A stretch of DNA of 64,000 nt, taken from Bugula neritina (Eukaryota; Animalia; Bryozoa). Both the position numbers and the translations under genes were made by a program. The notes under the pieces were generated by a model. That model had not been told where the DNA came from, made no database searches, and saw nothing but the letters and a program-made list of their open reading frames with translations. This document shows positions 1 through 63,905 of the stretch, in pieces (the stretch's first letter is position 1; each line of letters starts with the position of its first letter). The stretch is taken from positions 23,924,126 through 23,988,125 of the forward strand of contig OZ037766.1 in assembly GCA_964035545.1 (NCBI GenBank). Reading direction: 5' to 3'.

Positions 1-3000
1 ACAATTATCTTCAAAACAATAACTCATTTGTTGATATTTTAAAGAATATCCAGATGAATGGAGTATCAGCAGCCAACTTGACAGCAAAAGTCAACAACAC
101 TGGTGGACAAGGAGTTCCTCCAGGGACAAACTTCACTGTTTCTGGTAATCCATCCATCTCCAGCCATCAGCAAACACTAATACCAGCAACTAATACCACA
201 GCAACAACATCAACTACTAACATTACAAACACACCAACTACTACCATTACAAACACACCAACTACTACTACAGCAGCTACACCAAAAACTACCACAAAGG
301 CACCAATCACAAAAGCTTCCAAACTGTGTGATAGTGTGATAGTAGACTCTTTCCTAGTAACTTTACCCAACACATCAGATAACAGCTCTAGTACAATATT
401 ATTGATGCAGCTTGCCATGGCTAAAACGGTGAGTTGTTACTGCATATATATTCACAATATTACTATACTACATTTTAAACTAATGTATGAAGTAATATTT
501 TAGGAAACCCCAAAAATTTTTTAACAAGGCTAAAAATAGTTTGGTTATGTATAAGTTACAATGGAGTCATTTCAATTATTATACATGTACAGATAGTTAT
601 TATCAACAGATATATAGCATATAGGCTTATTTGAATGCTGTATATTATTATTGTGTTAACTAAAGTGACCATGGTTTGTATAAAATCAAGTAAATATTTG
701 AGCATGACTAGAATTATAACTGAAGTCATGTGTTGTAGTGTGATTGGTATACCATTTTGAAAATAGTTTTGTCTGCGAGTATTGTTGTATATTTGATGCA
801 TGCATCTTCTTTAGCGTTCGAAAAATATATATCCTACGTTCTAGACAATTGATAATTAAGCTAACATAACCATATATAGTGATAAATAATTTCAAGTGAC
901 TGCATATGAGCACTATTTACATAACAAGGAGCAAATAAGTTAGTTTAGCTAATCAAGTTACTGTAGATTTTACAAACTATTCCAATTATTGCTGTTGCTA
1001 GTCTCTGCCGTTTTAGTGTAGGCCTATTGCATAACTGGAAAGGTGTTTTGTAATGCTCCTTTTTTTCGTATTTTGTAGGCAACTAAGATCCCAATTTAAT
1101 TTTAATTTTTAATTTACTTGTGATATGTATACTTTATTCAACTCCAAAGCATTGTTTATTCTACAAATTCCAATTATCTCTTTAATAGTAACATATTTTA
1201 TCAAGTTTCTTACAATTCATATGGGAGCTTTTCAATTATAGCCTACTATTCTATATCTCTGTACAACTCAAACCACATAGAAACCATATTAGTATCAATA
1301 TAGACTTTTACAGAGGAATAAGTCAAAAGTGTTTCCAAATCATCAACGTACAACAGCTTTCTTAAAATTTGAAATCCCTAACATCTCTAATATTGAAGGA
1401 GTGCTCTACCTGCTGCTATAATTTGTTATGATGTCCCAAATAGTGTGAAACGCATGGTATTTGCTAAAAGTATCACATAATTAAAGGGTTTATATTTTCT
1501 GCTTTTTTATTCAGCGTGAAGTTATGACAGGACGTCAACAAGTCATAAATAAATCACTTGTGATGGGCAGTAATTGTTGTTCATTATAATTATCTCAGCT
1601 TGGTAACAAATTGATACCTTATCTATAGTGTTTTAACTCAAATAATGAAGTAAACTTTAAAGCATAGTATAAAAAAGATTTGCAATAAATATTTCTACAT
1701 CTGGTAAACTATTATATATTTAGTATAGCCTTTATTATTGTCCTTTAAAACATATAGTATGCATATAATAATATATTAAATAATTAATAATTTGACTTTG
1801 GTTTCAACAAAACAGCTCTTTATAATCTGTCACAATACTGTTTATTGATAGTTAACTTGGTAAGCAATATACATATTGTATACATAGTATACAAAAGTTA
1901 TTTATAATTGGTTTTTGTAGTTAGAACAGTACTTGATAGACAGGAATACACAGAGTACCACGTATAAAGTTGTTGATGTCAGTTGCTATTCCAACTCTCC
2001 AACTGATTACACCTGCAGAACCACATGTGAACAGAAACCAACCAGGTTACGCCAAAAGAGAAGTCAATCTCAGATCTCTTTAGACTTTAACAATTATCTT
2101 CAAAACAAAAACTCATTTGTTGATATTTTAAAGTATATCCAGATGAATGGAGTATCAGCAGCCAATTTGACAGCAAAAGTCAACAACACTGATGGACAAG
2201 GAGTTCCTCCAGGGACAAACTTTACTGTTTCTGGTAATCCATCCATCTCTAGTCATCAGCAAATACTAATACCAGCAAATACTACCACTACAGCCTCACC
2301 AACTACTACTACTACTACAAAAATACCAAATAATACCATTAGAGAAGCTCCAACTACTAATGCTACAAAGAGACTAACTACTGCTGCAATAGACACAACA
2401 ACTGTCACCATTGCAACAGCAAGAAATGCTACTACAATGTTAACCAATGTCCTTCCTGAGACTACAAATATGGGTACAGAAGTCAAAGCATCAGCCAGTT
2501 ATAAGAGTGCATCACAAAATGTTAATAATTTGTTCATGATTTTAATGGGCGGAATTAACATTAATACCCACAAAGATAACATTATAATAGAACAACCAAG
2601 AAGCTATGAATCAGAGATTGCTCAAACAACAGATAAAACAGGTGAGTGATTGTAATTGAAACGCATTTTTAAATGGCAATTTTGATAATTTTTATACTAT
2701 AAAGCTTCTTTAAAAGCTAAATAGTAATATATTATATCTTAAGTGATTTGGCTAAGTTTGATGTTAACGACTATAACATTACGACTAGTAACAGTATATT
2801 GCTCTACTTTTTAAAATATGTTCTAAAACATTCTTAGGTGTGAAATGTCACTGTTATATGAAACTAGCACAAATAATTATATTACATTTATTAGGTTATA
2901 GCTTACTAATTGTCATCTATTGTGTTGCTTTGTCTCATGTTACAGTATAGTTACTCTTGGATGGTTATAGAGAAACACTCAGGAATAGCAGTTTCAGCTG

Positions 3001-3770
3001 AATTATTGCATGCTGCTTAAATTTTTCTCACTGTGACAAATTATTGTATACTTTTTATTCAGAATGTTCTATGTGAAAATCTAATATAGTATGTGTATTT
3101 TTCAATTAAACAGCACTTGGAGCAGATATTTGTATTTCATGCTCTAGAGAAGCATCATGCAGATGGACACCTCTGAAAGGGCTACATTGTCAATGTAACC
3201 CTGGATTTGCTGGAGATGGGAGGCACTGTGTAGGTGAGAATAGAAATGCTTTCAACTATTGAACTAGTATTAATTTCTGACAGTTTCCTATTTACCAAGC
3301 TGTTGCAGTTCAAACTATTCACATAACCATGCAGCTAGTTCCATAAAAGTTTTATATTATTCTAGTGCATGGTAGTTAAATGTTTCTTTATTTTAGAGCT
3401 AAGTTTTTTCATATACTGCCATATATATGCTGACATTTATATACTAGGAAAAAGCCTAAAATTCATTATATTGCGACTAAGAACAATTTGATTTGGCATA
3501 AACGTTCTAGAATTTATGTACATAACAAACTGGAAGTTAGCTAGTTGGTTGGTAAAAAGTTTGACAGATTGTAATTAATAGTCTATATTTCTATGTAATA
3601 ATGTAGATATTGATGAATGTTCTTCTGGCACCCAACTGAGATGTAGTACCAAAGGTTACTGTGTAAACACCCATGGCTCTGCCAGATGTCAGTGTTATCC
3701 TGGCTACATTGGAAATGGAATTGATTGTATCCATCAAAGTTTTCAAAAATCATATGACAATTATAACTAA
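1..3770 (+). CDS. Secreted mucin-like protein, 3' part: repeated SEA-like + Thr/Pro-rich modules followed by EGF and calcium-binding EGF domains (5' end outside window)
   Basis: Exons <1-428, 1921-2641, 3114-3233, 3607-3770 (TAA), with GT-AG junctions and phases 0/1/1 consistent. Thr/Pro-rich stretches. EGF CISCSREASC...CQCNPGFAGDGRHC and cbEGF DIDECSSGTQLRC...CVNTHGSARCQCYPGYIGNGIDC. No transmembrane helix before the stop. Confidence 0.75.
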
Positions 3771-5587
3771 AACAATTATAATAATATATCTTTGTGATTT
3801 ATACCTGGTAATTCCAGTTTTAAATTGTACATGTAGTTCAAGTATAGTATGAGGCGCTGGTGCTTCTATTTTAACTAATTAAATTAGTTTATGATTATAT
3901 TTGATTCTATAGATATGCTTGAAAATTTATACCATGCTGTTGTAAGATTATAATGGAACATGACTAACTTACAGAAAATAATTTGGTAGTTGAACAACAA
4001 TTTGAGTTCTAAATATGACATCATGTGTTTCTGCTGTTCATTTTTAAATATAATTTAAACCATTGCGCAGCATGGGTTAAGTGATAACCATGAATGTTTT
4101 AAAGTAGCCTGAAAATTATAAATAAATCATTTGAATAAACTGCAGAAATAGTATTTCTAGCTGGTGTTAGATCCAAAGTCTTGCTAGTTCTAAGTAGGCT
4201 ATACCTAAGCTTATTATAATCCCCAGTTTCAAATTGATTGATAACTTGCTGGATGAGTTGACAGTGTGTATGTGCAAAAGTTTTTTTGTTGGTTAATTCA
4301 ACTTAATAGTTGACTTACTATTTAAAGTGATAGACTACCTAACTTATTGGGCGACTTTGCTATTATATGACTGCATTAATTATAAGTTCTATTAAGTGGC
4401 AAATAGCAGTTATTTCTGATTATTACATTCATCAGAAGCTATTTAAAAAAGCTGTTTGAAAATTAAAAACGTATATAAAACACATTACCATGAATTACTT
4501 GTGTTATAAACGCTAGAATTAGCAGGATGGTATATGGCAAGACTTTTTATTGCCTGATGTTGTGAAAATTACTAACAAAATTTAAGTTTTGCATTTAGAT
4601 TGACCTAGATGCACACTCTATCACATGTAATAACATTGTCAGCCAGCATGATGTCACTCGTGTGCACAAGCAATGCTATTGTTTGACATACTGTATGTAT
4701 ATTACCCTAGCGAGTAGGAGCATTGTGGGTTTTTCTCACAACGGTCAATGATAAAGTATAGTGATGTCATATTCCTTAAATTATGTTTTAAAGTATAAAA
4801 TGACAGGGTTTTATTGTAAAGTTTGAAGGAATCATTAGACTCTTGGAGTATTCGGGCTTATGAGCGAAGAGGAGACAAATGCTGTGTTGTGTTGACTGAC
4901 AGCAATTCTGGAAGCAGAACAGTATGTGGTTATTGGTAAATACTGTGTATTTCCAAGGACATGAGAAAATAGATATGCAGCAAATAGTCACATTAATTTC
5001 TGTTTGTAAAGAAAATATTTTGTTTAAGCTTAAAAAATAAAATAAGTGACATACTATATTAGTTCATAAAAAAATTATGAAAAAATGGCAAGTGTAGCTA
5101 AAATAGAATTTAGATACTGTCAAAAATATAAGATAATGGCGCACCTGGAATTTGAGAGCATAGCTTATAGAAGATTCTTATAGAGAGGTTGAGGTATAAA
5201 CAAAAGGATAACCAGTAAAAATAAAACGAAAAGGTAAAACGCCAAAAATTAAAAAGATCCATGTAGCCACGATTCTAAAAAATTTATGGGTAGTTATTCA
5301 TTAGATTTCAAAAATAAATTTTAGAAAAACCTCTACACGCTAAACTTCCAAGAATATTTGAAAGAAGTAAAGATTCCTTCTGAATTCAGTACTCAGTTAC
5401 ATAATACTGCAAAAAATTACGATAGAGATTATAAATGGCACCACATTGAAGGCATAGTTGAAACATACTTAATGATGGATTGAAACAGATTTAAAACAAA
5501 CCTTGTTAATAGGCTACAGATAGCTTTTAAAGAACCATAATACTATAATTCAGATCTAAGTACAACATTCCCTAAAGAGCACGAGAT

Positions 5588-8500
5588 CTAGACTGGTCTT
5601 ATACCAACAATAGATCTCAGCTGCTCGAATATAAAAAATGTGACTATAGTGTGTGGTCCTATTCTCATCCAGTTCGGTATGAAGCCCTTATATAACCCCT
5701 TTAAACCTTCTGCTTTAAGGCACTGACGGGCTGCGTCTAATGGTGAATTGTATTTAAGACCTTTTCCACCTGTTAAACAAAAATAATAATACTAGAATCC
5801 AAAAACTTATTTCAACAAATATTTCATTATATTAATATAAACAAAATATCATACATATATAGCAAGTAGCAACTTAGCAAGTTTTACAAAATTTTAAAGT
5901 ATAAAATCCAATCAAATTATTTTTGTAGAGTTTTTTTTTGCAAACTTAAACATCTCTAACCTGTCTTTCACTGCTCATGGTAAAAAACAACTACAGAACT
6001 CCACATAAAAATACAACCATTATATTGATTATTTCTATCACAAAATTGACTATTTTTATAAAAAAGCTGACGAGATACAAACCTATCTTATGCTGATTCA
6101 TAATCCTAGTTTTTATAGTGTCCACTGGAGAGGTGGTGATAGCACACATCAGGCCAGCGACCATTGAGGATACAATATGCAGAGGGACTCCTTCCTCCAT
6201 GAGCTGGTGGTTTAGTAAGGTGTGCTTCATGTGGTCATACGTGGGTATCTAAAGTATCCATACAGCGGATGAACAGAAGATAGGAGAAAAAAGCTCAACA
6301 CAGTTGCGCTTATATTTATTAAGCAGCACATCAACATGGAACTTACCTGTAAATTAAACCTACACAATCGCATCAGAGAAATTAAAAAAGGCACTAGTTA
6401 GTTTAATTTTTACCAGTGCGCCTGTATTTCTAGCATTTATGTTTAGCTATTTAAAAACCAGAAGAAAAAAATTGCTTTACGCCTGCGAATGAATGACATA
6501 TCATAGATTTACGAAACTGGTCAAAGTTAAGCGATTGTATTTTATACAATAAAGAGTTGTCTGCTCTTGATATAGCTGAATGCTCAGTACAGACTGGAAC
6601 TTATTTTGTCATCCTTAGTTACAACAAAAATCCAACAAGATTATTGGTACACCTGAGCGTAGGTGATAAACTATTTATATAAATACTGGCGCAGAAGCTT
6701 CCTCAAACTACTTTCCTAAATTAAGAAAACAACTGCAAAATACTGACAAAATAATTGAGCTTTAATATACTGCTATGTACTAAGAGACTTACAACTACTC
6801 ACACAAGTTTATAGTCGCTATCCCTGTGAGAAACCCCTGATAGAAAAGGTAAACTTTTGTTAAATCGGGCTAAGGACTTATTCAGATGAGGCACAGGAGC
6901 AATTATGACTAGATGCTCTTTTTAACATCACCAATGGCCTTTGTCTGGGCTCGAACCCATGACCTTCGTGCTTACTAGGCAAACGCTCTAACCCCTAGAC
7001 CAAAACTACTATTACGTAAAATAAGATATGCAATGTAAATATCTAACTAAACATTAAAATTTAATGTTAATTTTGTTACCAATAGTTGTGCCAAAGGTAA
7101 TACTTATTTACTTGAGTAGCTGTGAGTATCATAGCTCTACACACAGTAGGTGTACATCCTGTCCAAAGACCTCTAACACCTATGAAAATAAAACAATATA
7201 AGAAATAGACATTCTCAGCTGCACGTCAATGCCGTAGAGATAGACTGATTAACTGTCATTCAGAGGTGGTACTGCGTGAGGGTTACAAACCACTAGCAGA
7301 AAGGTTGTTCACATGACCCATAAGATTGCTCTACTCTACCAACTAAGTCACTCACATTCGTTTATTGCAGAGCAATGCACCTCATTATTATGTTTCATAA
7401 ATCAGAGCCGAATTTGCAAAAAATATATGTTATTGAGTAGCTATGACATAGAGGACACAAATCCTAATGACTTGAACATTACAATTACTTACATTTAAAT
7501 TTCAAGTATACCTGCAAAAAATAAACAGGTAATGCGGCAAATTTTAGTGAGTAATCTACAATTATCAGACAACAATTGTTCATTTTAGATAAAAAAAATC
7601 TGAAAAAATCCTTTTAATGTCATTCAAGTTGCAAACACAAGTGTAGGTCATTTCATACTGCCTGTAGGCAGCATTGCACAAAGTGGAGGCTAGACGCAGA
7701 CTGCAACGCTTCTAACTTATACACTCGAACATCTTTCAACTTAAAACCAAAGACTTCAAGTGTTTTAGACAACACTGTGCATACAATAATTATGATCATA
7801 CTAGTGTCTCTAGCCAATACCAGAAACATACACTGCGACGATTAAATGTTTGGTATCTATGAACTATAAACCTGTTGTAATTGCAAGTACCTTCAGTTTG
7901 GAGAATTTCCCGGAAAGCAGAGACGACTCCCGTATACCTTACAGATTCCTGAGGAGACAACTTTCCCTGAGCTTGAAGTCTGACCTTGATGAGGTCAGTT
8001 GGGTTAGCGAGAGCTGAACCTATTGCACCTACAACCAGTGCAAGGGAAGGGATTGAATACCACAGGCACTTATGTAAAGCTTGCGCAAGTTTATAGTGAC
8101 CAGCCCTGTGAGAAATCCATGATGGAAAGGGTTGTTTTTAAAGCGGGCTAAGGACTTATTCATATGTGACACAGAAGCAATTATGTCTGGATGCTCTTTC
8201 TAACATCACCAATGACCTTTACTAAAGTTTGAACCCATGACTTTAGGTTTACTAAGCCAGCGCTTCAACCCCTAGACCATGACTGCTCCCTGAACATCAC
8301 AATGACTGAAGCCCAATAAATGCAAGACTAATCAGCTGATACTTTGACCTCTATCAGATTCAATCTATACACCCAATAGACCTGAAATTAAACTATAACA
8401 TTTTTATACACTATAAATATGTTCTAGCTACAGAAAACACAGTAAATAATAGGTGAGGGCTGTCAAATTGTCCAAGTTTAAATAGTTGCTTCAAATGATA

Positions 8501-52712: not shown

Positions 52713-55700
52713 TTACTGTTGACAGCTGTCACTGGCAGCATCATATGTCAAAGTCTCGTCAGCACAGGTGGAGATAAGCAGCAAGTGTATAGCTTCTCCT
52801 TGATCATTCTCTTCCGCATCAACAATTCTGTTAAAAATAATTTGCAGTATATTAAGGAAAGTTAAAATATTTTATAATAAAAAAACGATGTTTAGGACAT
52901 TTGATTGTTTTGTGCATAACAGAGAAATTAAACATGATTTGTGTAACAATTGTACTAAGTACATACATTAAATTAGTATTGTAATTACAATACTTTACTT
53001 ACATTGCATTAGTAGTAGCATTACACTGTACTTAGAATACGTTAGTATTAGTATTATATACACTGTACTTACATTACAACTTAGTATTAGTATTACGCTC
53101 TACTTACGGTTGGCTTAGGGTCTGAATCACAATCTCTGAATATGTTGTTTCGTGATCAACCAGCCTCTCTCTCAGAGTAACTCTCAAGTCATCAGGAACT
53201 TCCTTTGTGTCAACAGAGTACACATTGTCAGTTGGCCAATAGACTGTCAGCACATTTCTGTCACATTCATATGAAGGTGCCATCTCAGTAGACATGTGAC
53301 AGTCTTGAGTATGCAAAATAAATGTCTCAAATATTATGCTAACATTGTGATAATGCATATAAAAGCAAAAAAGCATATATTACAACATAGTACAGAAAAC
53401 ATTGGTGACCAGTTCTAACTATTAGAATAACTAAAAGAATAAATAATCAATTATCAATCAACATATTTTACTTCTTCTAGCCAATTATTTGAAATTAACA
53501 TAGTAAATTCTACATCAGTCGTGTTTTATACGATATATTAGTTTAAATAATTAGCATAACTAAAAGTTTCAGTGATGAATAATTAGCCAAATATATTTTT
53601 GACTTCTACTATAAGTAATTTCAGTGAGACACATTATTCAATTTACTCAAACACATTAAGTCTGACTGTGGGACATATCTAGTTGGTGGCATCAGTATTT
53701 ATATGTTGTATTGTTAGTATTAGCTAACCCTAAACCTTAATCAATGAATCAAGAGAATAGTATATTATTACCTATACGGAAAACGGGGTCAAGAAGAAAT
53801 GCAAAATACTAATAATACAAAACTATTTATTTTGTTTAATTTAGTTTACTTTCTATCCAAGAACACATACAAGTTCAAGCTGCATATAATATATCGAGCA
53901 TGTAAATGTGTTCTATCGCTATAATAATTTCAATAAAAAAATTTATAGTGCTATAAGGTAGCTATAAATTAAACGCATCTTCTTAGTTTTTCTTTCAAAG
54001 CAAACAAACAGACAGAAATTACAGCTAAAGCATAATTTATTAATGTTTTTGGTATTTTTCAATTTGAGTGTGTAATCTAAATTAACGTCATTGTTCTTGT
54101 ACTTGTTTGTTTTCTATTATATAGTACGATTTAAACAGTTTATATTGTTAAATAAATATTCAATTTGAACAATTTTTATTTACCGTTTGCACAAATTCTC
54201 TGGAAATGGTTTTTTTGACGAGACAAGGAGTTTCTAAGAGAATTCCTGTTGTAAGCATTTCTCAGAGCATTGCACGAGACATGATATTTTGCCATATATG
54301 TTAGCCTTCTTACAATTGGTGACTCTGCAAATAAACCATTTTTATACTAAAAATAAATACATATATGTGTGTGTGTGTGTTGTGTGTGCTGTGTGTGTTG
54401 TGTGCGTTGTGTGTGTGCGTTGTGTGTGTGCGTTGTGTGTGTGCGTTGTGTGTGTGCGTCGTGTGTGTGCGTTGTGTGCGGTGTGTGCGGAGTGTGCGGT
54501 GTGTGCGTGTGTGTCTGTGTAATGATGAAAGGTTTCAAACTAGTTAAGTGTTTTTTAATCATTTTTGAAAAAAGAACCTAATTATCAGATAACACCCAAT
54601 GCAAGTGATGACTTTATAGCTTACCTAAAACATTGACGTAATACTGGCATTCAACTGTGTAATGAGATTTAGTAAACTGATAGATTCCTTTTGGAACTGA
54701 TACTGTACTACTGCCCGGGAGTGTGACTTTAGCTGTATCATGGCCAGGAGTTAGGTATGTGGTAATGTTGGTGTATGGGCATAGAAAATGTAAATCTACA
54801 ATTATTAACAAGAATTAGCATGTCTTAGAAAGCACTAAGCACTAAGGTTTTATGTATGCTAATGTAATTGCTAATGAAATCAGGAAGAATATACATATAC
54901 TGCTGTGTGTTGAAAAAAGCTCAAACAAAACATTTTGGCTTGTTTTCCATTTTATCTGATGTGTTTACTTACCAGTCAGTCTGTACATGTCTCTGAGCAT
55001 CCCAATATATACTTCATTTCCAATTTTGGTTACAGACACAGGATGGTTTGGCAGCTGACTGCTAATGTTACAAGGGTTCTCACCATTAAAACAGACCGGG
55101 CCCACAACCTGCTCATTAAAGTCTACTAATCGCACCATTTTGCTGTTGTAATCAACGACCAGGTAGACACCTGATTCTAATTTTGCAAACTCTTCTGGGT
55201 GGCTAAACATTGCCTGAATAAAGCTGCCATCAACATGGTTGGAAGAGTGCGAACCAGTGATTATAGTGTTTGTAACAGACCCATCAATTGACCAGCTGAC
55301 TTGAGAGATATAGTTATTATTTGCTACTAACAAATGGCAGCCGTTCCATGCTAGACCTCTGGGGCCATCAAACCCAAAATTAGCAACAGTACCTAATTCT
55401 CCAGTAGCAATATCTACTGATCTTAGCGCATTGTTAAATACATCGGTAACAAGTAGCCTGCCATGACCTCTCATATCTATTTCAACACTATGAGGACAAT
55501 TGAATCTACCAACATTTGCCCTGCCTTCTCCATATCCTGTTTTTGTACAAATACCTGCTAGAGTTGAATAACTGTTTGTTTCCCTGTTCAAGATCTTGAT
55601 ACAATGGTGACCCCAAAATATTGTAGCAACTAAAGTGTCGTTTATTTGTTTGAAACTAGTTATGGCAGTACGTTCACCATCTATATTCCCCACAATTGTA

Positions 55701-57708
55701 GAGACGTTTCCGTCAGTAGTCCGTAGTTCATGTGTTGTGCTGAACAGAATTTGCCCATCATTATTATATAGATCTTTCTCTATATGGTAGATAGGGTGTG
55801 AAAACTCAAGAAAGTGGCCAGAATAATTGAATGAAACACTACAAGTATATTAGTTTAACAAAATATTATTATAACATTATTATATTGTATAAAAATCTTG
55901 TGCTAGTTAGACTAAGGCATTATTATTTGAAACCAATTAAAGATCTATTGTTCTCTGCTGAAGTGCAGTGGCTTGCACAATAACATAATATTCTGAACAG
56001 CTTTGCTAGTAGAGATAGATATTAAAAAATTCTGTCTTCTAGTCACAATTACAAAGAATTACTGCTATTTTATAAGTTTTAATTGAAAGGTATAGAGTGA
56101 CCCTTGCAAAATACTGCATGCAGCCGGAGTAGTGACTTAAAGTGTACCAACTAAGCTCTACTATAATGTGTGAAGTCAGCACTTTCAAAATGAAACATAA
56201 TAAAGTTAAACAGAATTATTAAAGTCTTTTCTTTTTTAAATTGTCAAACCTTTTACAATAAATTATGAAAATTTTATATTAGCAAAACACGAGAAACATA
56301 CATACGTAAAACGTTTTTCAAGGTTTTAATGCAGCAACGCAGGTCTTATTTACACTTATTGCATGTGTTGGCATTTTACCTTTTTTAGGCTAAAATAAGC
56401 AAGTAGAATGTAAGTTAATGCACCATCCTAGGTACTTACAGATATGGTGATACTTACCTTGGATTATAATTCACACTCTCTGCATATGTTTTCGGGCCAA
56501 ATATTAACACGAAAACCTAAAATTTAACCAAAAAATTGCTATATATTATTTAAAAAAGAAAATTTAACTCCACTAAGTTCCATTAGTAGATGAATCAATA
56601 GTGATGCATGATATACTGCATTGGACATTAAGCTATACTGATTTTTATTTATAATATTCATTGTACGTTTCAGGCTTGATTAATACTATTACTGTTATAA
56701 TGGATATCATAAAAAACTTTTCCATTGCCAGTGAAGAAATCATCTGAAAATGATTTTGTTTTTACAATAAAACCAGATAAAGCAAACTACAAATATTTAG
56801 TGGTCATGCTAAGTTACTTTCACCTAAAGCTGTTTTGCAATGTAAATAAATGCAAGTTTACAAAAATCACTAATCATATCATTTAGTCTCGAAAATTATG
56901 TCTATATAACATTATTTTTTACACTTTCCAGAGGAGCGTAACTGAATTTATTTGTATGCTTAGTCATAATACATCTGTAAAACAACTGGGTTAATAATTA
57001 CCATGCGAGTTGGTTTTTAGGAAAAAGTTCAGTTTTTCAGCAACTTAAATTGATTTAGCATGCAGGAAGCAGATATTGCAATTGTATATGTTAGTGTGTG
57101 TGTGTGTGTGTGTGCGCGTGTGAATTCGCAAAACTTAAAAAAAGAATGTAAAACACATATGCAGTGCATTAGAAATATGTCTATATAGCAGCAGTCTACC
57201 TTTAGTAACATATATTATGTAATAAATAAGTGTAAATAAACAGATGATGGGTAGTCTTAGCGTTTGACAAAGAAGCAGTTTCTAGAGTTTAAATAAAAAC
57301 ATATGCAAATGAGTATAAAATGAACTGAGCGGCCAATAATATGAAACCACATGTATAACTATATATAGATAGATAGTGTCTAATTTGTTTCTACGTTTCA
57401 AAATAACTTAATGAAATAAAAGTGAAAGTTGATGAATAATTTAGAAATGAAACCTTTATAGATAAATGGATTCAGCTTCTATCTAGATATACTTTGTAGC
57501 AACATATAAAAATATTCCACTGAATAAATTTAACATATATATCAAATTCTACTTGTTATACAACTTTTAAATACTGTAAAATATTTTACCAGTACTGTTT
57601 TCAATAAAACATCATATTGAAAAAAAAACACTTAGTTCTAGGTCTGTGTTCTAATACTGCAAAGATAACATGTTTGTCACTTACAGCAACCAACAGATGG
57701 TGCGTCAT
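52713..57708 (-). CDS. Secreted NHL-repeat beta-propeller protein with HYR-like domain and uncharacterised Cys-containing C-terminal module
   Basis: Exons 57708-57685, 56516-56458, 55838-54973, 54795-54625, 54324-54184, 53303-53108, 52827-52713 (TAA), phases consistent. Signal-like MTHHLLVAVFVLIFGPKTYA. NHL blades GEGRANVGRFNCPHSV, GFDGPRGL, DGSFIQAMFSHPEEF. Confidence 0.75.
54361..54520. repeat. Degenerate (GT)n / gcgttgtgtgtgt repeat
   Basis: Direct inspection. Confidence 0.85.
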
Positions 57709-58372
57709 TTTCTCTTCCAGGCTTATGATCCTCTTTCCTATATCTAGACTTTCTCGTAGGAGCGGTAACTAAATAACTAATATGATACACTCTGCAAAGA
57801 ATGAGTTTAAAATAGTCTAGTTTAATCAAAAGCAGTTGTATTACAGCAGGGAAGTGGGTGATAAAAGCAAAAATAACTGAAGCTTGACTTGCTCTATATT
57901 ATGCAAAGGTCAAAGGGATTTTGGAGGGAACCAAAACTAAAAACTCCACTAAATAGTCACATGAGTTTTGAAAATGTTTGCTCATAAAGATTAATTCTTA
58001 TAATAGGTCAAGCTGATGTCATGTTGCCTTCCGCTTTATATTAAAATATCTTAGATAAACAAATCAGTATACCAGGAAACAACATGAAAGTCTGCATGTA
58101 ACCTACTGTAAAAGCAGTACTTGTAGTGACAAAATATGATGTGGCACTGTAAGATATTCAAATACAATACACGTTTGTAATAACTAAAATTTTTTTAGTC
58201 TCTAGGAAAGAGAGCTTATTAAATACATTAGTTTTGAAGCTTCCAAATGACAGCAGTTTTGGCAAGAATGCTGCAAAATGACTACTAAGTTTACTGAGAG
58301 TTCATATGCTTGGGGTGTCAACTAGAGTTCATGCCTTATTAAATCTAACAGCTATAATTAGTAGATCTATCA

Positions 58373-58532
58373 CTGCGTTTCCATTATCGCATTATGCGAA
58401 TGGATTTTTTCATTCAGCTAATGGAAACAGTTACATCGGATGAAACCGCAACTATAAGGTAATGCAAACCACAAACCACAAATAATCCGTACGAAGCATT
58501 CATTCGCATTATGCGCAGTCATGGAAACGCAG
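58373..58532. mobile_element. Small MITE-like inverted repeat
   Basis: ctgcgtttccat..cgcattatgcgaatg at the left end and cattcgcattatgcg..atggaaacgcag at the right end. Confidence 0.6.
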
Positions 58533-59536
58533 CGTATGTGAATTATGTCTCCTTGTTATTGTCATAATCAACATCTATATATCACATTTGTATAGTTCTT
58601 GCTAACCAGTGTTATCATCATTAACATTCTTAGTAGTCTTACCAAATAAATCTACAATCTAGTGCATTACAAGTCAGCACCATCTTGTTGCATATCATTA
58701 CACTACATACCACCGCGAAAACCTCCAAAATGTCACCAAAAATCTCAAAATATATGACATGTATACAAGGAAAAAATATGCTAAATCTGTTGCCGAAAAT
58801 GCCAAAACTGTTGTCGAAAACATTGAAATGATTGCGTCTTGAAATAGTATATTCCATTCACATCTTCAGGGCATTACCACAGCCATAGTAGATGAATTAC
58901 AATAGTTAAAATTTGCAGTGCCTGCTAACAAGTCGACTTAAACTTATATAGAAACTTTAATGAAAAGATAATTTCTATAAAAGTATATGTGAATAATGGG
59001 CATGCATGTGTATTTCAACATAATTAACCAAAATCACGTCCTCATTCTATCACTCTTTGTATGTGATTATCAAGGTTTTATAATATGGTTTCTAGTTTAT
59101 TACCTTAGTATCTATAATATACTCATTATTACCAGTGCAACGCATCAAAGCATCAAAAGATAAGAATATAAATGAAGTGAAATTAAAACATGTTTATTGG
59201 TCAAACCTCAAAATTAGGAACCTCAGTGAGAAAAGACAAATCTCAAAAAGCTGCTAATGGCTGTTTCTAATTTTGAGTTCAACTTGTAAGACAACCTGAG
59301 GCATATTTTTACAAACTGAAGCATTTAGTCAGCGCCTAAAATGAATTATAATTGAAATATTATGTGTTAGTAATAACTTTAGATGAAAGATATCTATTTC
59401 TTTATAACAGATTAATTATAGTTTTATTCCCAGGTACATGTCTTGAAAGATGCAGCCAGCCGTCTTGACAATGCGGCAAGCTTGTAGTTTCGATCAAATA
59501 TTCTTTAAGTAAATTCAAGTATGTGTTGACATTTTG

Positions 59537-62500
59537 CTAGTAACAGCTGTCACTGGCAGCGTCATATGTCAAAGTCTCGTCAGCACAGGTGGAGATAAGC
59601 AGCAGGTGTATAGCTTCTCCTTCATCATTCTCTTCTGCATTCACAATTCTGTTGAAATATTTCAAAGTGAAAAACAGTAAAATAGGTTTAAAGCATTTTA
59701 TTATTCTGTGCATAACAGAGAAATGAAACATGAATCATGATATAATTATATTGCCTTTGCTTTAATATTACTATTATGATTACCTTTTACTTATAGTATT
59801 TGTACAACCATTACATTATAATTATTTACAGTACATGAGTATCAATATTGCACTGTACTTACATCACATTAGTATACATTCACTATACTATACATTACAT
59901 TAGTATCAATATTATACACTGTACTTACAGTACATTAGTATTATTAATATTACACACTATACTTATATTACATTACTAATAATATTACATTGTATACTTA
60001 CAGTACATTAGTATTACCATTACACTGTACATACATTACATTAGTATTATTACTACGCTATACTTACGGTTGGCTAAGGGTCGGAATCACAATCTCAGAG
60101 TATTTTGTCTCGTGATCAACCAGCCTCTGTATCAGAGTAACTCTCAAGTCACCAGGAACTTCCTTTGTGTCAACAGAGTACACATTGTCAGTTGGCCAAT
60201 AGACTGTCAGCACATTTTTGTCACATTCATATAAAGGTGACATCTCAGTAGACATGTGACAGTCTAAATAATATAAAACAAATGCAGTACAGCCAAAATT
60301 GGCAGTATTTGGTACAATTAATCTCATTAATATAATAATGAAGGATTCTTTCAATCAATAATTAGTCAAATATTTTTTATAACTTCTGGCAATTTTTCAT
60401 TAATATATCTCGTTCTTTAGACTCAAGCACAATAAATCTGAATACGAAATATTTAATTTCACTAGTATTGGTTTAACCATTGCTATATAATGACAAAATT
60501 ACGAATACGGTCTAAAGCTGACTCTGTACACATGTGTGCCATTTTTTGCTAAACTGTTTATCTGAAATGAGTAGTCTTTGTATCATGGTACTAAGTTAAA
60601 CAAAAGATAACGTAGAAATCAAGGTTTATTAATCACTTTGCATTTTTCAAAGTGTGCAAAACAATTTGGTCATTACTGTGGTTGTCCCTTTTTCTCTCAT
60701 AATGTTTATATAAAAGATATGATGATCTTGAGTCCGTAACAGCTTTAAGTATTATGTATTTACCATTTGCACAAATTATCTGAAAATGGCTTCTTTGATG
60801 AGACAAGGAGTTTCTAAGAGAATATCTGTTGTAGGCATTTCTCAGAGTATTGCACGAGACATGATATTTTGCCATATATGTTAGCCTTCTTACAATTGGT
60901 GATTCTGCAAATAAACAATTTCATAATAGAACAAATAAAATATTAGCAATTAAGCACAATCTAAATGAAAAAAATATTTATGTACCACTTCAAGCTATTA
61001 AAAGTCTTTTCATTTTTTCTTATTCGTCAGACAATGTTATGTACCATATAAGGCTAAATTCATAGCTTGCCTAAAACATTGATGTAATACTAGCACTCAA
61101 CTGTGTAGTAAGATTTAGTAAACTGATAGACTCCTTTTGGAAACGATACTGTATTACTGCCCGAGAGTGTGACTTTAGCTGTCTCATGGCCAGGAGTTAG
61201 GTATGTGGTACGTAATATTGGTGTATGGGCATGAAACATGGAACCATTTTATAGAAAGCAGTGACCCATGTAAGCTAATGTCATTATTGCAAAAAATTGA
61301 AAATTAATTTGCAGTGAAAATAGCTTGTTTCACTGAATAGACATGAGTCATAGCTAAATACACAAAAATTTGCATTTGTTATACTAAAAACAGACCAGTA
61401 AATTCTGACTTTCAGCTACAGTGTGAAAAGAAAGATAAAAGGGATGAACTAATGTTTTGCTAGCTGCTAAATTTGGGGCAGCATGTTGTGAACTCTTACA
61501 GCTGCTGTTTTGCAGGCATGGGATCAGCCATTGAAACAGTTGCTGATTGCATACATGCACAGGTTTTGGAATGCTGTGCTTCTATGTAGCAAATTGGACC
61601 AGCTTAGTTTGCTACTTAGAAACGCAGCATTCCAAAACTTGACACAACCTTTGAATATCCATATTGTAAATTTATAGTATCATTAGAAAAAAATAGAAAA
61701 TTACTTTCTTGACTGAAACCAGCTTACGTATATTAAATCATGTTTTGAAGTAAAGTATATTATATAGATGCTTAAATTCTGTTTTCAAAAAAATTTATGA
61801 GCGTTGGTTTAAGAGTATAACGAAGTAGCGGTGGTCTGGCGGTTAAAGCACTTGCTTAGTAAGCACAAAGTCAATGGTTTGAATCTTAGCAAAAGCAATT
61901 GGTGATGTTAGAAAGAGCATCCAGTCATAAATGCTCCTGCATGTACAACATGTAAATAAATCTTCAGTCTGTCTAAAACCCTTTCTTATTAGGGATGGCG
62001 ACTATAAACCCATGTGGGTATAAAGATATTTTTTTGTTTAACAAAATCTTTCTTCTTGTTAACGACACATAATGCTGTGCTGACTTACCAAAAACATCAA
62101 TAAAATAAATTGACTTGTCATTCCCATGTGTTTTAGCAAACATGTATGAGCCTTTGGGAAAGTACCAGGTGTATTCACTGTTTGGCAACTGCACTGCTGT
62201 CATGTTTTGACCAGGATTTAGAATAATGCTGATGTTTTCCCCAACAGATAAACAAGTACCCACTGCAATGAAAATATGTAAAGTTACATCAAACTTCAAA
62301 GTGTTAGAGTTTGTAAGGAAATGATTTCAATACCATGTAGCAGCATAATATTGGCAGATTTCTGTATTAAACAACTAGTCCATGTTGAATCATGAATACA
62401 ATATGAAGAATGTATACGGGCTTTTTATAGCAAAAATAGATTAAAGATTTGCATTAATTGACTTTTGCAAACTAAAATATCACGAATACAACACCTACAA

Positions 62501-63905
62501 CTGTTACCTTGGTCAATATGATCACCAGATATTGCTCTAACATAAAGCTCAGTTGGTTTACATTGAGTATTGGAGTCATTGGAGAAACCAGAACTGCAAC
62601 CTTCGCTATTGAGAGAGTCCAGACTGTGGTAGCCAGATTTACATGTGTCACAGTTTAAGCCTTCAACATTTATCTGTATTTACAAATACAGCAGCATAAT
62701 TAGAATCGACCAGCATATAATGTTATCACAAATTTCCGAATAAAGTGTTTTAAAAACCAGAATGTACGCATAATGCTTTCAATCTGATTTCCTAAATTGA
62801 ACAATCTAACAATTGGTTGCATGGTAAACTTGTTAACAATTTGCCAAAGTACAACTTGCTAAATGCAACAATTTTACCTGATAACTATTTGATAAGATCA
62901 GTGTGTGACTATTATTGCTATATATCAGCCATGTGTCTTACCTTGCATTTGCATTGACCAGTCACGCTGTCACATTTCACGGTATTATTGAAGCTGCCAG
63001 CCTCTACACACTGACATAGCTTGCACCCATTGACCCCAAAGTCATAGTAGTTAGCACTGCACCTATCACATTTCAAACCTTCTACTCCGGGCATACACGT
63101 GCACTGCCCATTCATGTCGCACTGTGGACTCAGAGCTCCTGAGATATAATATAATTTGTATAAATGAAGTATTATTAAGTATTATATTATGAGCTTTCAA
63201 ATGAAATCAATTCTATAATCAGCTTCATGTTGAGGGTGACTGAGTGCAATAGTTTGGGGTTCTCGGGTTGGAAATTGGGCGCTCTAATTTCAAATTCAAA
63301 CTTGAGAATCCCAAACTTCTGCACTCGGTCACCCCCAACTGGAGCTGTCTATAAAGCTATTCTTCCAAATGTGTGTCTCAAACAATTTATTTGATTGCTG
63401 TAGAAAAAAGCAAAGGCTCAAAATTTCAAATAATTACATAATACAAGTTATCCGTATATAATGTTGCCGTAATTATTACAAAAGCTACCCATTCATAGCC
63501 ACATTTTTAAATTATCAACTCACACAATTTCTAAACTTTTAAAGTGTAAGAAATGCATTTAAATATCTGAAATACTTACGGAGCAAAATCAGTTATTTCT
63601 GTAACAACTCTATATGTCAATGTATGAAAAATTTGTTTTAAGCTTGATAAACATGCCTAAGCCTGCAGTAATGCATATAACTATTGCCTGTTAAACATAC
63701 ATCCTAGTGCACATACCTATTTCGCTACATTCACACTCTATACACAGATTTGCAGGAGTTTTTCTGAAATAATTTGCTTTGCATTTTTCACAGTGAGGAC
63801 CATCTGTGAAATCTGAGCAGTTCTGGCAGTATCCACCAGAGCCGGTCTGGTCATAGAGGGTTTGGTTGAAGACACAGCTATTAGATTTATTATTACACTG
63901 GCATT
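59537..63905 (-). CDS. Chimeric protein: laminin gamma-type LE (laminin-EGF) repeats fused to a HYR-like exon and the same C-terminal module as the neighbouring NHL gene (5' end beyond window)
   Basis: Exons 63905-63717, 63138-62942, 62673-62508, 62262-62089, 60904-60764, 60263-60068, 59648-59537 (TAG). The LE sequence CQCNNKSNSCVFNQTLYDQTGSGGYCQNCSDFTDGPHCEKC...CKINVEGLNCDTCKSGY follows the laminin gamma-1 short-arm LE2-LE4 pattern as I recall it. The last three exons are paralogous to 54324-52713. Confidence 0.75.
59820..60060. repeat. Intronic minisatellite (tacattagtatt..tacactgtact), with a shorter paralogous array at ~52960-53100
   Basis: The same ~30-35-bp degenerate unit occurs in the equivalent intron of both paralogous genes. 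Confidence 0.7.
61071..61232 (-). pseudogene. Pseudo-exon: inactivated copy of the HYR-like exon 54625-54795
   Basis: Near-identical to 54625-54782 but with a 4-nt insertion (ggtaCGTAat near 61211), CAG>TAG stop (cta at 61090-61092), donor GT>GC and no acceptor. Confidence 0.8.
61562..61640. repeat. Short palindrome
   Basis: gttttggaatgctg..tcta..tagcaaa / tttgcta..tagaa..cagcattccaaaac. Confidence 0.55.
61822..62010 (+). mobile_element. tRNA-derived SINE, copy 4
   Basis: tggtctggcggttaaagcacttgcttagtaagca head, ggtgatgttagaaagagcatccagtcataa core, agggatggcgactataaac tail. Confidence 0.75.
63212..63357. mobile_element. Short palindromic MITE (family also at ~11960-12110 and, more diverged, ~18053-18227)
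   Basis: gggtgactgagtgca...tttggggttctc vs gagaatcccaaac..tgcactcggtcaccc inverted arms; a similar ggggcgattgagtgcag / ctgcacttagtcactcc pair lies near 12000. Confidence 0.65.

Follow-up and report, generated by a model that had tools for sequence, protein, structure and literature searches.

The window analysed here, a stretch of 64,000 nucleotides from a bugulid bryozoan (Bugula neritina, contig OZ037766.1), contains half of a palindromic four-gene cluster, with genes A and B on the minus strand inside the window and genes C and D on the plus strand past its end. Genes A and D are typical of a large, lineage-specific set of secreted NHL-propeller proteins. In this family a signal peptide precedes an NHL-type propeller of six blades; the small beta modules that come next number one or two (the 'HYR-like' exon), and the C-terminal domain, ~150 aa from three exons (t1, t2 and t3), is referred to below as the tail. 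Genes B and C carry this tail behind laminin-type heads and, as predicted from the layout, are transcribed head-to-head with a common 4.5-kb spacer. The parts of gene A are as follows.

56667..56725, minus strand: candidate first exon with a donor in phase 2; its short peptide is hydrophobic and signal-like (putative; ORF and donor found by script)
54973..55838, minus strand: head, a six-bladed NHL-type beta-propeller in one exon, phase 2 in and phase 1 out
54625..54795, minus strand: 'HYR-like' exon with phase 1 on either side, encoding a small beta module that has two cysteines (splice sites read from the sequence)
54184..54324, minus strand: tail exon 1, encoding beta1 and the long alpha1 helix of a ferredoxin-like domain
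53108..53303, minus strand: tail exon 2, encoding helix alpha2 after the beta2-beta3 hairpin
52713..52827, minus strand: tail exon 3, with the stop codon

The propeller exon of gene A encodes 289 aa, which AF2 models (pLDDT 95.5, pTM 0.92) as 24 strands in six four-stranded blades. When the PDB was searched with Foldseek, the top matches were NHL propellers (prob 1.00, E 5e-12 to 1e-9, TM 0.6-0.76), including NHLRC2, TRIM71, Thin, PknD, Pizza6 and Bacteroides NHL proteins. The exon itself has no Pfam match, PF01436 included; several of its close homologues have precomputed PF01436 assignments, and remote bacterial homologues have NHL or SGL families. The initial annotation had placed an NHL propeller in gene A and laminin EGF (LE) repeats in gene B, and both assignments hold, the first by predicted fold and Foldseek and the second by PF00053. 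Compared with its orthologue in contig L026, the A propeller exon has a pS of 0.153 and a pN of 0.037. The second ATG and the donor of the candidate first exon are kept in L026, although conservation is no higher there than in the flanks; paralogues of A have a clearly conserved signal-peptide exon at the matching relative position.

The 'HYR-like' exon is kept in paralogues, where a Cys-Pro motif at its start precedes an N-glycosylation-type site, and the AF2 model of the paralogue P0063 gives it five beta strands. It had been called HYR-like, but neither the A and B exons nor contiguous family proteins match Pfam HYR (PF02494) at E<=1, and the label is used here as a name only.

The tail had been described as a module outside the named domains, and so it is: it is real and shared, phase-1 joins connect it at this locus with two unrelated types of head, and it has no match in Pfam, whether searched as single exons or as contiguous family proteins. 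Nor did P0063 give any phmmer match in the PDB, and no usable match for the tail came from the ESM Atlas, whether searched on features or on shape. In the AF2 model of P0063, whose tail is 55-60 % identical to that of A, the tail has a pLDDT of 90.2, and the 'HYR-like' part and the tail together are predicted to form a small beta module before a disulfide-rich, ferredoxin-like beta-alpha-beta-beta-alpha-beta domain of SEA/S6-like topology. The tail has six conserved cysteines, with no unpaired cysteine and no membrane anchor. Its best structural neighbours by VIA Z are the S6-like domain of alpha-dystroglycan (residues 181-303; 5.7), the SEA domains of MUC16 (5.5 and 5.4) and TMPRSS6 (5.1) and a transmembrane-protease SEA domain (4.4), and the weak top rows of a Foldseek search are alpha-dystroglycan; with Z below 8 throughout, these scores faintly suggest a common arrangement, not homology, and lie within the range of chance fold resemblance. 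The SEA family PF01390 had no match at E<=1 in an hmmscan of P0063, P0130, P0075 and P0083.

Gene B is represented in the window by the following parts.

63717..63905, minus strand: LE exon (Pfam PF00053 and PF24973)
62942..63138, minus strand: LE exon, phase 1 in and phase 0 out (PF00053, E 9e-13; splice sites are candidates)
62508..62673, minus strand: last LE exon, with a phase-1 donor at 62508 and an alternative at 62562
62089..62262, minus strand: the 'HYR-like' exon proper to gene B, with phase 1 on either side and 41 % identity to that of A (tblastn)
61059..61243, minus strand: dead partial copy of the A-type 'HYR-like' exon, 92 % identity to A
60764..60904, minus strand: tail exon 1
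60068..60263, minus strand: tail exon 2
59537..59648, minus strand: tail exon 3, with the stop codon

The LN domain, the first LE exon and the signal-peptide exon of gene B lie past the window end, up to ~5.7 kb further (the upstream exons were read in L001). Laminin_N (PF00055) scores above its cut-off in three exons, the exon matches are without stops, and about four LE repeats were counted by exon reading, with PF00053 present. The best PDB matches of the head are laminin gamma-1 and netrin-1 (E 8e-15 for LN by phmmer). The head, earlier described as a laminin-gamma fragment, is of gamma/netrin-1 type and more than a bare fragment, since the LN and signal-peptide exons lie beyond the window edge.

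Two exons between the last LE exon and the tail of gene B resemble the 'HYR-like' exon. Gene B's own version has a canonical acceptor and donor, is in phase with 60904, and is probably the working link to the tail. In the second, A-type copy the homology to A begins ~10 nt inside the exon, so that there is no acceptor, and the copy also has a B-specific 4-nt insertion, which shifts the frame, and a CAG-to-TAG stop, both absent from A and from its orthologue in L026. The GT-to-GC change at its donor was considered as a further lesion and discarded, because the A orthologue has an identical GC donor. Since the copy began inside the A 'HYR-like' exon and left only a dead partial exon, B most likely splices from 62262-62089 directly to 60904. 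We infer the splice chains of both B and C from phases, open frames and conservation.

Gene C lies just past the window and has an LN-LE head of laminin-beta/netrin-4 type, with about four LE repeats by exon reading and its stop at extended coordinate 80127. Laminin_N (PF00055) is above cut-off in a single exon of 221 aa (E 1e-57 by phmmer against the PDB), the best PDB matches of the head being laminin beta-1 and netrin-4, and the junctions have canonical splice sites with matching phases. Contig L030, 9 kb long and from a related lineage, runs collinear with the whole of gene C, LN through stop, with all exons open, and omega between the two is 0.05-0.5 per exon and 0.33 overall. By this comparison the gene C chimera is conserved and under purifying selection in the related lineage. 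For gene B, no orthologue was found among public proteins (searched with the B 'HYR-like' frame) or metagenome contigs (searched with the 'HYR-like' and LE exons), so that constraint on B has to be read solely from the small A-B pN/pS count given below.

The shared three-exon tail that had been claimed for A and B was recovered with the same coordinates and matching phases, the nucleotide differences in exons 1, 2 and 3 being 11/141, 12/196 and 10/115. The exon lengths agree as reported, exactly in the first two; in B the stop falls one codon earlier, so that the third exon has 112 nt there and 115 nt in A. Over full codons 130 of 145 amino acids are identical (~90 %, close to the ~88 % first estimated), and the other common elements that had been listed, namely minisatellites of 35-39 nt in the exon 2-3 intron and a 3′UTR block of ~120 nt that aligns at 66 %, are present in both genes. 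There is in addition a fourth homologous block, A 54613-54793 against B 61059-61243, with 88-92 % nucleotide identity.

Homology between A and B is mostly limited to exons and their immediate flanks, and the tail exon 1-2 introns of the two genes are unrelated. A and B could on this account be old duplicates kept alike by purifying selection alone, with neither copying nor conversion in the recent past, but the synonymous sites argue otherwise. Over the tail we count 12 synonymous differences in 95 sites and 16 non-synonymous in 340 (pS 0.126, pN 0.047, pN/pS ~0.37), and an A-B pS of this size is unsaturated, whereas exon 1 of A or B differs from that of C or D with a pS of 0.69-0.90. A partial exon without function and the intron that follows it are also common to both genes, and over the exon 2 core the paralogue pS falls below the orthologue pS. 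An old duplication with selection alone is therefore very improbable, and the synonymous-site data already contradict it. The A-B copy is better called patchy, because the exon 1-2 introns are unrelated; it would have been made in two or more tracts, or else the intron was remodelled later. An account of the A-B likeness as conversion confined to exons had to be softened, since the intron after the 'HYR-like' exon occurs in both B and L026, and in A a (TG)n array interrupts it.

The first 150 nt of exon 2 are nearly identical in A, B, C and D. The pS of this core is 0-0.06, and that between C and its orthologue in L030 is 0.163; the paralogues are closer to one another at synonymous sites than orthologues are, which is the pattern expected of gene conversion. 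No Rfam family or tRNA was found within 52-64 kb, so that an embedded RNA gene does not explain the nucleotide identity of exon 2. The statement that the tail was recently duplicated has to be qualified: the A-B copy, whose pS of ~0.13 is similar to the orthologue divergence (pS 0.13-0.15), is as old as the split from a sister lineage, and the conversion of exon 2 among the four genes is much more recent.

So close a repeat might also be produced by the assembly or by uncollapsed haplotypes, and half read depth over the tail would be expected in that case. Gene B is instead covered at single-copy depth, ~105x, its unique tail parts at 105-108x like their surroundings, and only the exon 2 core is raised, with a contig depth of 225-363x against flanks of ~105x, as expected for three to four true copies. 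A search for sequencing runs with this sequence listed no RNA run and a single run of DNA type, which is probably the one from which the assembly was built, so that this check is not independent of it. The copies nevertheless differ by 6-9 % in their exons, with unrelated introns and different flanks, and the orthologues of A and C stand on separate contigs of another sample; the chance that the duplicated tail is an artefact seems to us negligible.

Gene B could also be a decaying, non-functional chimera formed by partial duplication of A behind a laminin-like gene, with A, C and D as the only working genes. Its dead exon has a frameshift and a stop, and its tail branch is longer than that of A (0.10 vs 0.00) in a tree that places A and B as sisters and C and D as sisters (66 % support), both pairs nesting among propeller-headed tails. 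All six A-B differences in the exon 2 core are non-synonymous, and the failure to find an orthologue in public proteins or metagenome contigs points the same way. The dead exon, however, never had an acceptor and need not disturb the splicing of B, and the LN, LE, own 'HYR-like' and t1-t3 exons are all open with canonical in-phase splice sites. The pN/pS over the whole tail, together with purifying selection on the sister chimera C, argues further for function, and we regard decay of gene B as unlikely.

Across the genome at least 85 matches to tail exon 2 and at least 120 to the propeller exon were found, which puts the propeller family at 85-120 members or more. The initial annotation had envisaged a modular scheme of general use, with many unrelated binding heads plugged onto one constant tail, and some features do suit it: four head types occur, namely the NHL propeller, LN-LE (of two laminin types), FN3 (gene L018, on another contig) and EGF (the metagenome transcript P0117), and all junctions are phase 1. 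The FN3 and EGF heads are the only others seen. There are also 12 of the 85 tail copies without a nearby propeller, of which three were inspected. The great majority of tails tell against this scheme, for at least 73 of the 85 (>=86 %) lie downstream of one type of propeller exon, the median gap being 2 kb, and 19 of 20 fetched loci have the same order of propeller, 'HYR-like' exon and t1-t2-t3. The tail adjoins only two of eight Laminin_N loci. An exhaustive profile search of 1.84 billion proteins returned, above 200 aa in length, only seven that have the tail: four with propeller heads, one with EGF repeats and two without a recognisable head. A tail with many different heads is thus fairly improbable; the propeller counts make the propeller the default head and the laminin-headed genes rare chimeras. 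An array at C2 24.67-24.85 Mb has a 31-34 % match to the A propeller and contains the exon 2 motif. Transcription of the family architecture is indicated by P0083, an ORF of 520 aa on a 1.9-kb Logan contig. The public members with the tail are all named 'hypothetical protein', and we found nothing relevant to this family in the literature on bryozoans.

We consider it quite probable that the tail of the propeller family was transferred to laminin short arms in B and C, and that A-to-B copying and conversion of exon 2 came later. The source of the tail would be the propeller family, as the B and C tails each nest beside a propeller-headed neighbour. The present B tail would then go back to a copy event about one species-divergence ago that took in ~2 kb of an A-type 3′ end, started inside the A 'HYR-like' exon and left the dead partial exon in B as its scar; short-tract gene conversion still homogenizes the first 150 nt of exon 2 across A-D. 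As to function, the heads presumably give binding specificity, LN for laminin-node partners and the propellers for variable ligands, and the role of the common tail would be the same throughout and not enzymatic, docking to the matrix or to a single extracellular partner being the most likely one. A bolder proposal, to which we attach little weight, is that the tail has docking or assembly as its dedicated role and gathers very different heads at one extracellular site, with B and C tying or capping laminin-polymer nodes beside ~100 variable propellers, in a bryozoan-specific, matrix-anchored form of recognition.

To our knowledge almost no matrix or recognition molecules have been described in bryozoans. 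The locus would show how new extracellular proteins originate, partial gene copying having carried a lineage-specific C-terminal cassette over to ancient laminin short arms, with the scar of the breakpoint still visible, an orthologue in a sister lineage that shows C to be kept by selection, and short-tract gene conversion ongoing. The tail is an unannotated domain, predicted to fold confidently, and is what stays constant in one of the largest secreted gene families of a bryozoan.

Comparison of the tail with named domains leads to the SEA and alpha-dystroglycan S6-like domains, which are also extracellular and ferredoxin-like and follow a beta module, a likeness at the level of fold only. 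SEA domains have an adjacent membrane anchor, whereas the tail ends the protein 35 residues past its last strand, with no hydrophobic segment. SEA domains often contain an autoproteolysis motif in the beta2-beta3 turn; no such glycine-serine motif was seen in the beta2-beta3 hairpin of the tail. The LN and LEa parts of laminin beta and gamma chains are clearly homologous to the heads of B and C, but there are no open frames for the L4/LF domain, LEb repeats or coiled-coil exons of those chains between the last LE of B or C and the tail, and the gene ends with tail and stop ~3 kb after the last LE exon (at 59537 in B).

The closer parallel is with the netrins (netrin-1 and netrin-4 types), which like B and C are secreted and end in a single unrelated C-terminal domain after LN and a small number of LE repeats, the short arm being gamma-derived in netrin-1 and beta-derived in netrin-4. 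An LN domain and about four LE repeats joined via phase-1 introns to a beta module and tail give a netrin-like layout with a different C-terminal domain. Netrins have three LE repeats against the approximately four counted by exon reading in B and C, and their C-terminus is an NTR/C345C domain, in place of which B and C have the beta module and a ferredoxin-like domain without a Pfam match; the tail of B and C, unlike anything in netrins, would be borrowed from the bryozoan propeller family. Two netrin-like proteins with the NTR domain replaced bear on the reuse of LN-LE arms as modulators of basement-membrane assembly. The cluster finally resembles known cases of phase-1 exon shuffling with concerted evolution of tandem paralogues, in that its shared modules are phase 1 at both ends, a breakpoint scar is present and paralogues are closer than orthologues over a short tract, with nothing different in principle; it is a clear and fairly ordinary instance of exon shuffling and gene conversion, and a clean example in a little-studied phylum.

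The C-terminal domains of genes A (propeller-headed) and B (laminin-headed) match as closely as the initial annotation had proposed: alignment of the three exons (t1, t2 and t3) that encode this tail of about 150 aa gives 11 differences in 141 nt, 12 in 196 and 10 in 115 respectively, with approximately 90 % amino acid identity over full codons and exon phases of 1, 1 and 2. The t2–t3 introns of both genes contain minisatellites of 35–39 nt, a short block of 3′UTR is common to the two, and self-comparison identifies a fourth related block upstream, corresponding to a HYR-like exon that encodes a small beta module. The window corresponds to G000:C2:23924126-23988125; the genome as a whole is 216 Mb at 32.6 mol% G+C, with GT–AG introns. 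Two further genes were found by reading 49 kb past the window end, and the features concerned are as follows.

54613–54793, minus strand: HYR-like exon of gene A
61059–61243, minus strand: partial copy of that exon within gene B
62262–62089, minus strand: gene B's own HYR-like exon
Gene C, plus strand, beyond the window: LN exon, LE exons, HYR-like exon and three tail exons
Gene D, plus strand, beyond the window: propeller exon (44 % identical to that of A), HYR-like exon and tail

Gene B also runs past the window edge, with LN-domain exons up to a signal-peptide exon, and the contig order A(−), B(−), C(+), D(+) is palindromic, each laminin-headed gene (B, C) lying upstream of a propeller-headed one (A, D). 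The LN and first LE exons of B have their best matches in laminin gamma-1 and netrin-1, whereas the LN exon of C is closest to laminin beta-1 (E-value, 1e-57) and then to netrin-4, so the two heads are not recent duplicates of each other; the LE repeats are confirmed by Pfam. The 289-aa head exon of A has no Pfam match, folds as 24 strands (pLDDT 95.5, from an alignment of 48 homologues) and gives a model that matches solved NHL propellers with a Foldseek probability of 1.00. Its close public homologues are exclusively single-exon ORFs on metagenome contigs, and the remote ones are bacterial NHL/SGL propellers. The head-to-head spacer between B and C is about 4.5 kb long, extending (in window coordinates continued beyond the edge) from approximately 69722 (B signal-peptide exon, minus strand) to 74368 (C LN exon, plus strand), and is packed with (CA)n and (TA)n arrays; it is possibly a shared bidirectional control region.

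The tail is widely distributed in the genome, with at least 85 matches to its exon 2 and at least 120 to the propeller exon. Of the 85 tail copies, 73 follow a same-strand propeller exon at a distance of no more than 8 kb (median 2 kb), and the order propeller, one or two HYR-like exons, t1, t2 and t3 is seen in 19 of 20 fetched loci; several paralogues have a conserved signal-peptide exon 0.3–0.6 kb upstream in the right phase. Searching 1.84 billion representative proteins with an exon 2 profile gave 105 matches, mostly single-exon ORFs, with seven longer than 200 aa.

P0071, P0075, P0083 and P0161: tail proteins with propeller parts
P0117, from a JGI sample: tail preceded by two EGF repeats
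P0063: begins at the HYR-like module
P0130: a signal peptide alone before the HYR-like module

In P0083, encoded on a Logan contig of 1.9 kb, a single open frame of 520 aa presents the whole propeller-to-tail architecture. The named members come from Bugula neritina and Watersipora subatra, where they are annotated as hypothetical proteins; the best genome match of P0063 is 83–90 % identical per exon, and orthologous contigs of JGI sample 3300002729 differ from this genome by about 10 %. On these values the genome belongs to a bugulid bryozoan that is near to the B. neritina of GenBank yet distinct from it. The EGF repeats of P0117 (a 242-aa ORF on the 1214-nt contig L028, JGI sample 3300032616) run straight into a complete tail, no HYR-like module intervening, and since many single-exon matches carry its exon 2 variant, the tail domain reaches beyond Bugula. 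From the pairing, the exon order and the profile matches we conclude that the tail forms the constant C-terminal part of a family of secreted propellers in bryozoans.

The idea, raised in the initial annotation, of many unrelated heads plugged onto a common tail thus holds only in part: an unnamed tail is indeed shared by laminin and propeller heads, but its general association with the propeller does not fit a many-headed system. Among the tail copies whose heads were catalogued, laminin, FN3 and EGF heads are rare exceptions in the propeller family; nine further copies, with no propeller close by, lie at C2:24738851, 24739042, 27423895 and 31647349, at C3:31139048, and at C7:2932721, 10717306, 13533762 and 13686299. 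Only two of eight Laminin_N loci (B and C) adjoin a tail. At L018, a locus on contig 5 (G000:C5:1478235-1488234; plus strand, 1452–8427), the intact tail and its HYR-like exon have FN3 exons upstream, a third type of head; one of these exons matches an insulin-receptor FN3 domain (E-value, 6e-7), and the half domains are below threshold for Pfam fn3. We note that these exons are duplicated internally, along with a cysteine-rich exon. A separate locus, L011 (G000:C2:24730851-24740850), contains three exon 2-like open frames inside 6 kb, two of them (8004–8132 and 8198–8338) only about 70 nt apart, and neither t1 nor t3 was found there using the exons of A; it may be a tandem exon duplication in a divergent array at 24.7 Mb.

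Exon columns of t1 and t3 were aligned separately and then concatenated, and the resulting supermatrix tree pairs A with B, and C with D (the latter at 66 % support), both pairs lying inside the propeller-headed tails, as does the FN3-headed tail. Because the laminin tails nest in this way, the tail was transferred to the laminin heads out of the propeller family. Judged from sequence, the evidence that gene C is a real gene is good, and that for gene B is weaker. The JGI sample that yielded L026 (the contig orthologous to A) also contains a 9-kb contig, of which the 7 kb designated L030 follow gene C collinearly from its LN exon to past the stop codon at 85–94 % identity; every C exon is open in both lineages. 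Gene C is under selection, with omega values of 0.05–0.5 per exon (0.32–0.50 in the tail exons) and introns that are 87–94 % identical; the frame of t1 survives a 27-nt deletion in L030, and t1 of C differs from its orthologue by in-frame deletions of one and eight codons in a long helix. This exon (78988–79122 in extended coordinates, L030:4769-4900) is the most divergent in the cluster, with a branch length of 0.69. Gene B has open exons, canonical in-phase splice sites and a pN/pS of about 0.37 against A, and no orthologue of it was found by protein homologue search or metagenome scans.

The manner in which B acquired its tail is illuminated by aligning A and B with L026, a contig from a JGI metagenome that runs collinear with gene A over 2.5 kb, in introns as well as exons (89.5 % identity). 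In B, similarity to A begins some 10 nt into the HYR-like exon, and the copied exon therefore never had an acceptor; it also contains a 4-nt insertion, which disrupts the reading frame ahead of a conserved cysteine, and a CAG to TAG change, both of them found only in B. Its GC donor was considered as a further lesion and rejected, since L026 has the same donor. GC is present in L026 (position 2603) and in the dead copy (61066) and GT in gene A (54625), which looks like a GC–AG intron that became GT–AG in one lineage. B's own HYR-like exon is 41 % identical to that of A, and because its two splice sites are canonical and agree in phase with the last LE exon and with the tail exon beginning at 60904, the working chain most likely runs from the last LE exon through this exon to t1, t2 and t3, the copied partial exon being a scar. 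The A–B tails differ at 12 of 95 synonymous and 16 of 340 non-synonymous sites (pS 0.126, pN 0.047); comparison with the pS values of the A propeller exon against L026 (0.153) and of gene C against L030 (0.130) gives the copy about the age of the split of the sister lineages. B keeps several states shared with L026 that have since changed in A. The copy does not form a single clean tract: the intron after the HYR-like exon is common to B and L026 but interrupted in A by a (TG)n array, and the t1–t2 introns of A and B are unrelated, through either copying in two or more conversion tracts or later remodelling of the intron. Two very high-copy short repeats lie nearby, at 58201–58600 between A and B (summed contig depth about 15 000–26 000×) and at 61898–61939 in the B intron just downstream of its own HYR-like exon (about 76 000×; background 105×), and neither matches a tRNA or Rfam family.

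The first 150 nt of exon 2 are near-identical in A, B, C and D (pS 0–0.06), its last 14 codons have diverged, and exon 1 is saturated between A/B and C/D (pS 0.69–0.90). The 5′ border of identity falls within about 8 nt of the acceptor, and the introns upstream do not align. Exon 2 of C against L030 has a pS of 0.163, and L030 shares some states with A of this genome and not with C; paralogues are therefore more alike than orthologues, the hallmark of concerted evolution, here by gene conversion that is still ongoing. Contig depth over the exon 2 core (225–363×, against about 105× around it) is as expected for three to four copies in the genome and excludes a high-copy element, and no RNA family or tRNA was detected there. 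Over the first 50 codons (53110–53301 against 60070–60261) all six A–B differences are non-synonymous (pN 0.051, pS 0); these could reflect adaptation of the tail to a new head, although the sites are too few for a statistical test.

The fold of the tail was predicted for P0063 (Bugula neritina KAF6019239.1), which comprises the HYR-like module and a tail 55–60 % identical to that of A, using an alignment (A7) of 64 rows that combines spliced relatives and per-exon fragments. The model (pLDDT 90.2, pTM 0.78) has five beta strands at residues 6–57, followed at residues 58–201 by a domain of beta-alpha-beta-beta-alpha-beta order in which the first helix is long; the conserved cysteines number six in the tail and two in the beta module. 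Pfam, phmmer against PDB and the ESM Atlas all return nothing for the tail, and Foldseek of the model against PDB gives no match at E≤0.001. An exhaustive VIA search has a top Z of 5.8, and its highest-ranking matches include the following ferredoxin-like extracellular domains.

Alpha-dystroglycan S6-like domain: Z 5.7 over 97 residues, r.m.s.d. 3.1
MUC16 SEA: Z 5.5 and 5.4
TMPRSS6 SEA: Z 5.1

At these values the likeness is one of common fold and not of membership. The protein terminates with the tail and has no hydrophobic segment there.

Since the tail is conserved over about 100 genes with variable heads, is secreted and has no anchor and an even cysteine count, it most likely docks to a shared extracellular partner, such that the heads would bind and the tail would supply a common non-enzymatic service. 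LN domains of the beta and gamma types are the parts through which laminin forms its polymer nodes, and netrin-4 interferes with these nodes by means of a domain of this kind; the head-to-head pair of a beta-type and a gamma-type gene with a common tail could thus conceivably act on basement-membrane assembly, although we consider this improbable. Netrin-like LN–LE proteins, exon shuffling and concerted evolution are all of already known kinds; the tail is an undescribed domain.
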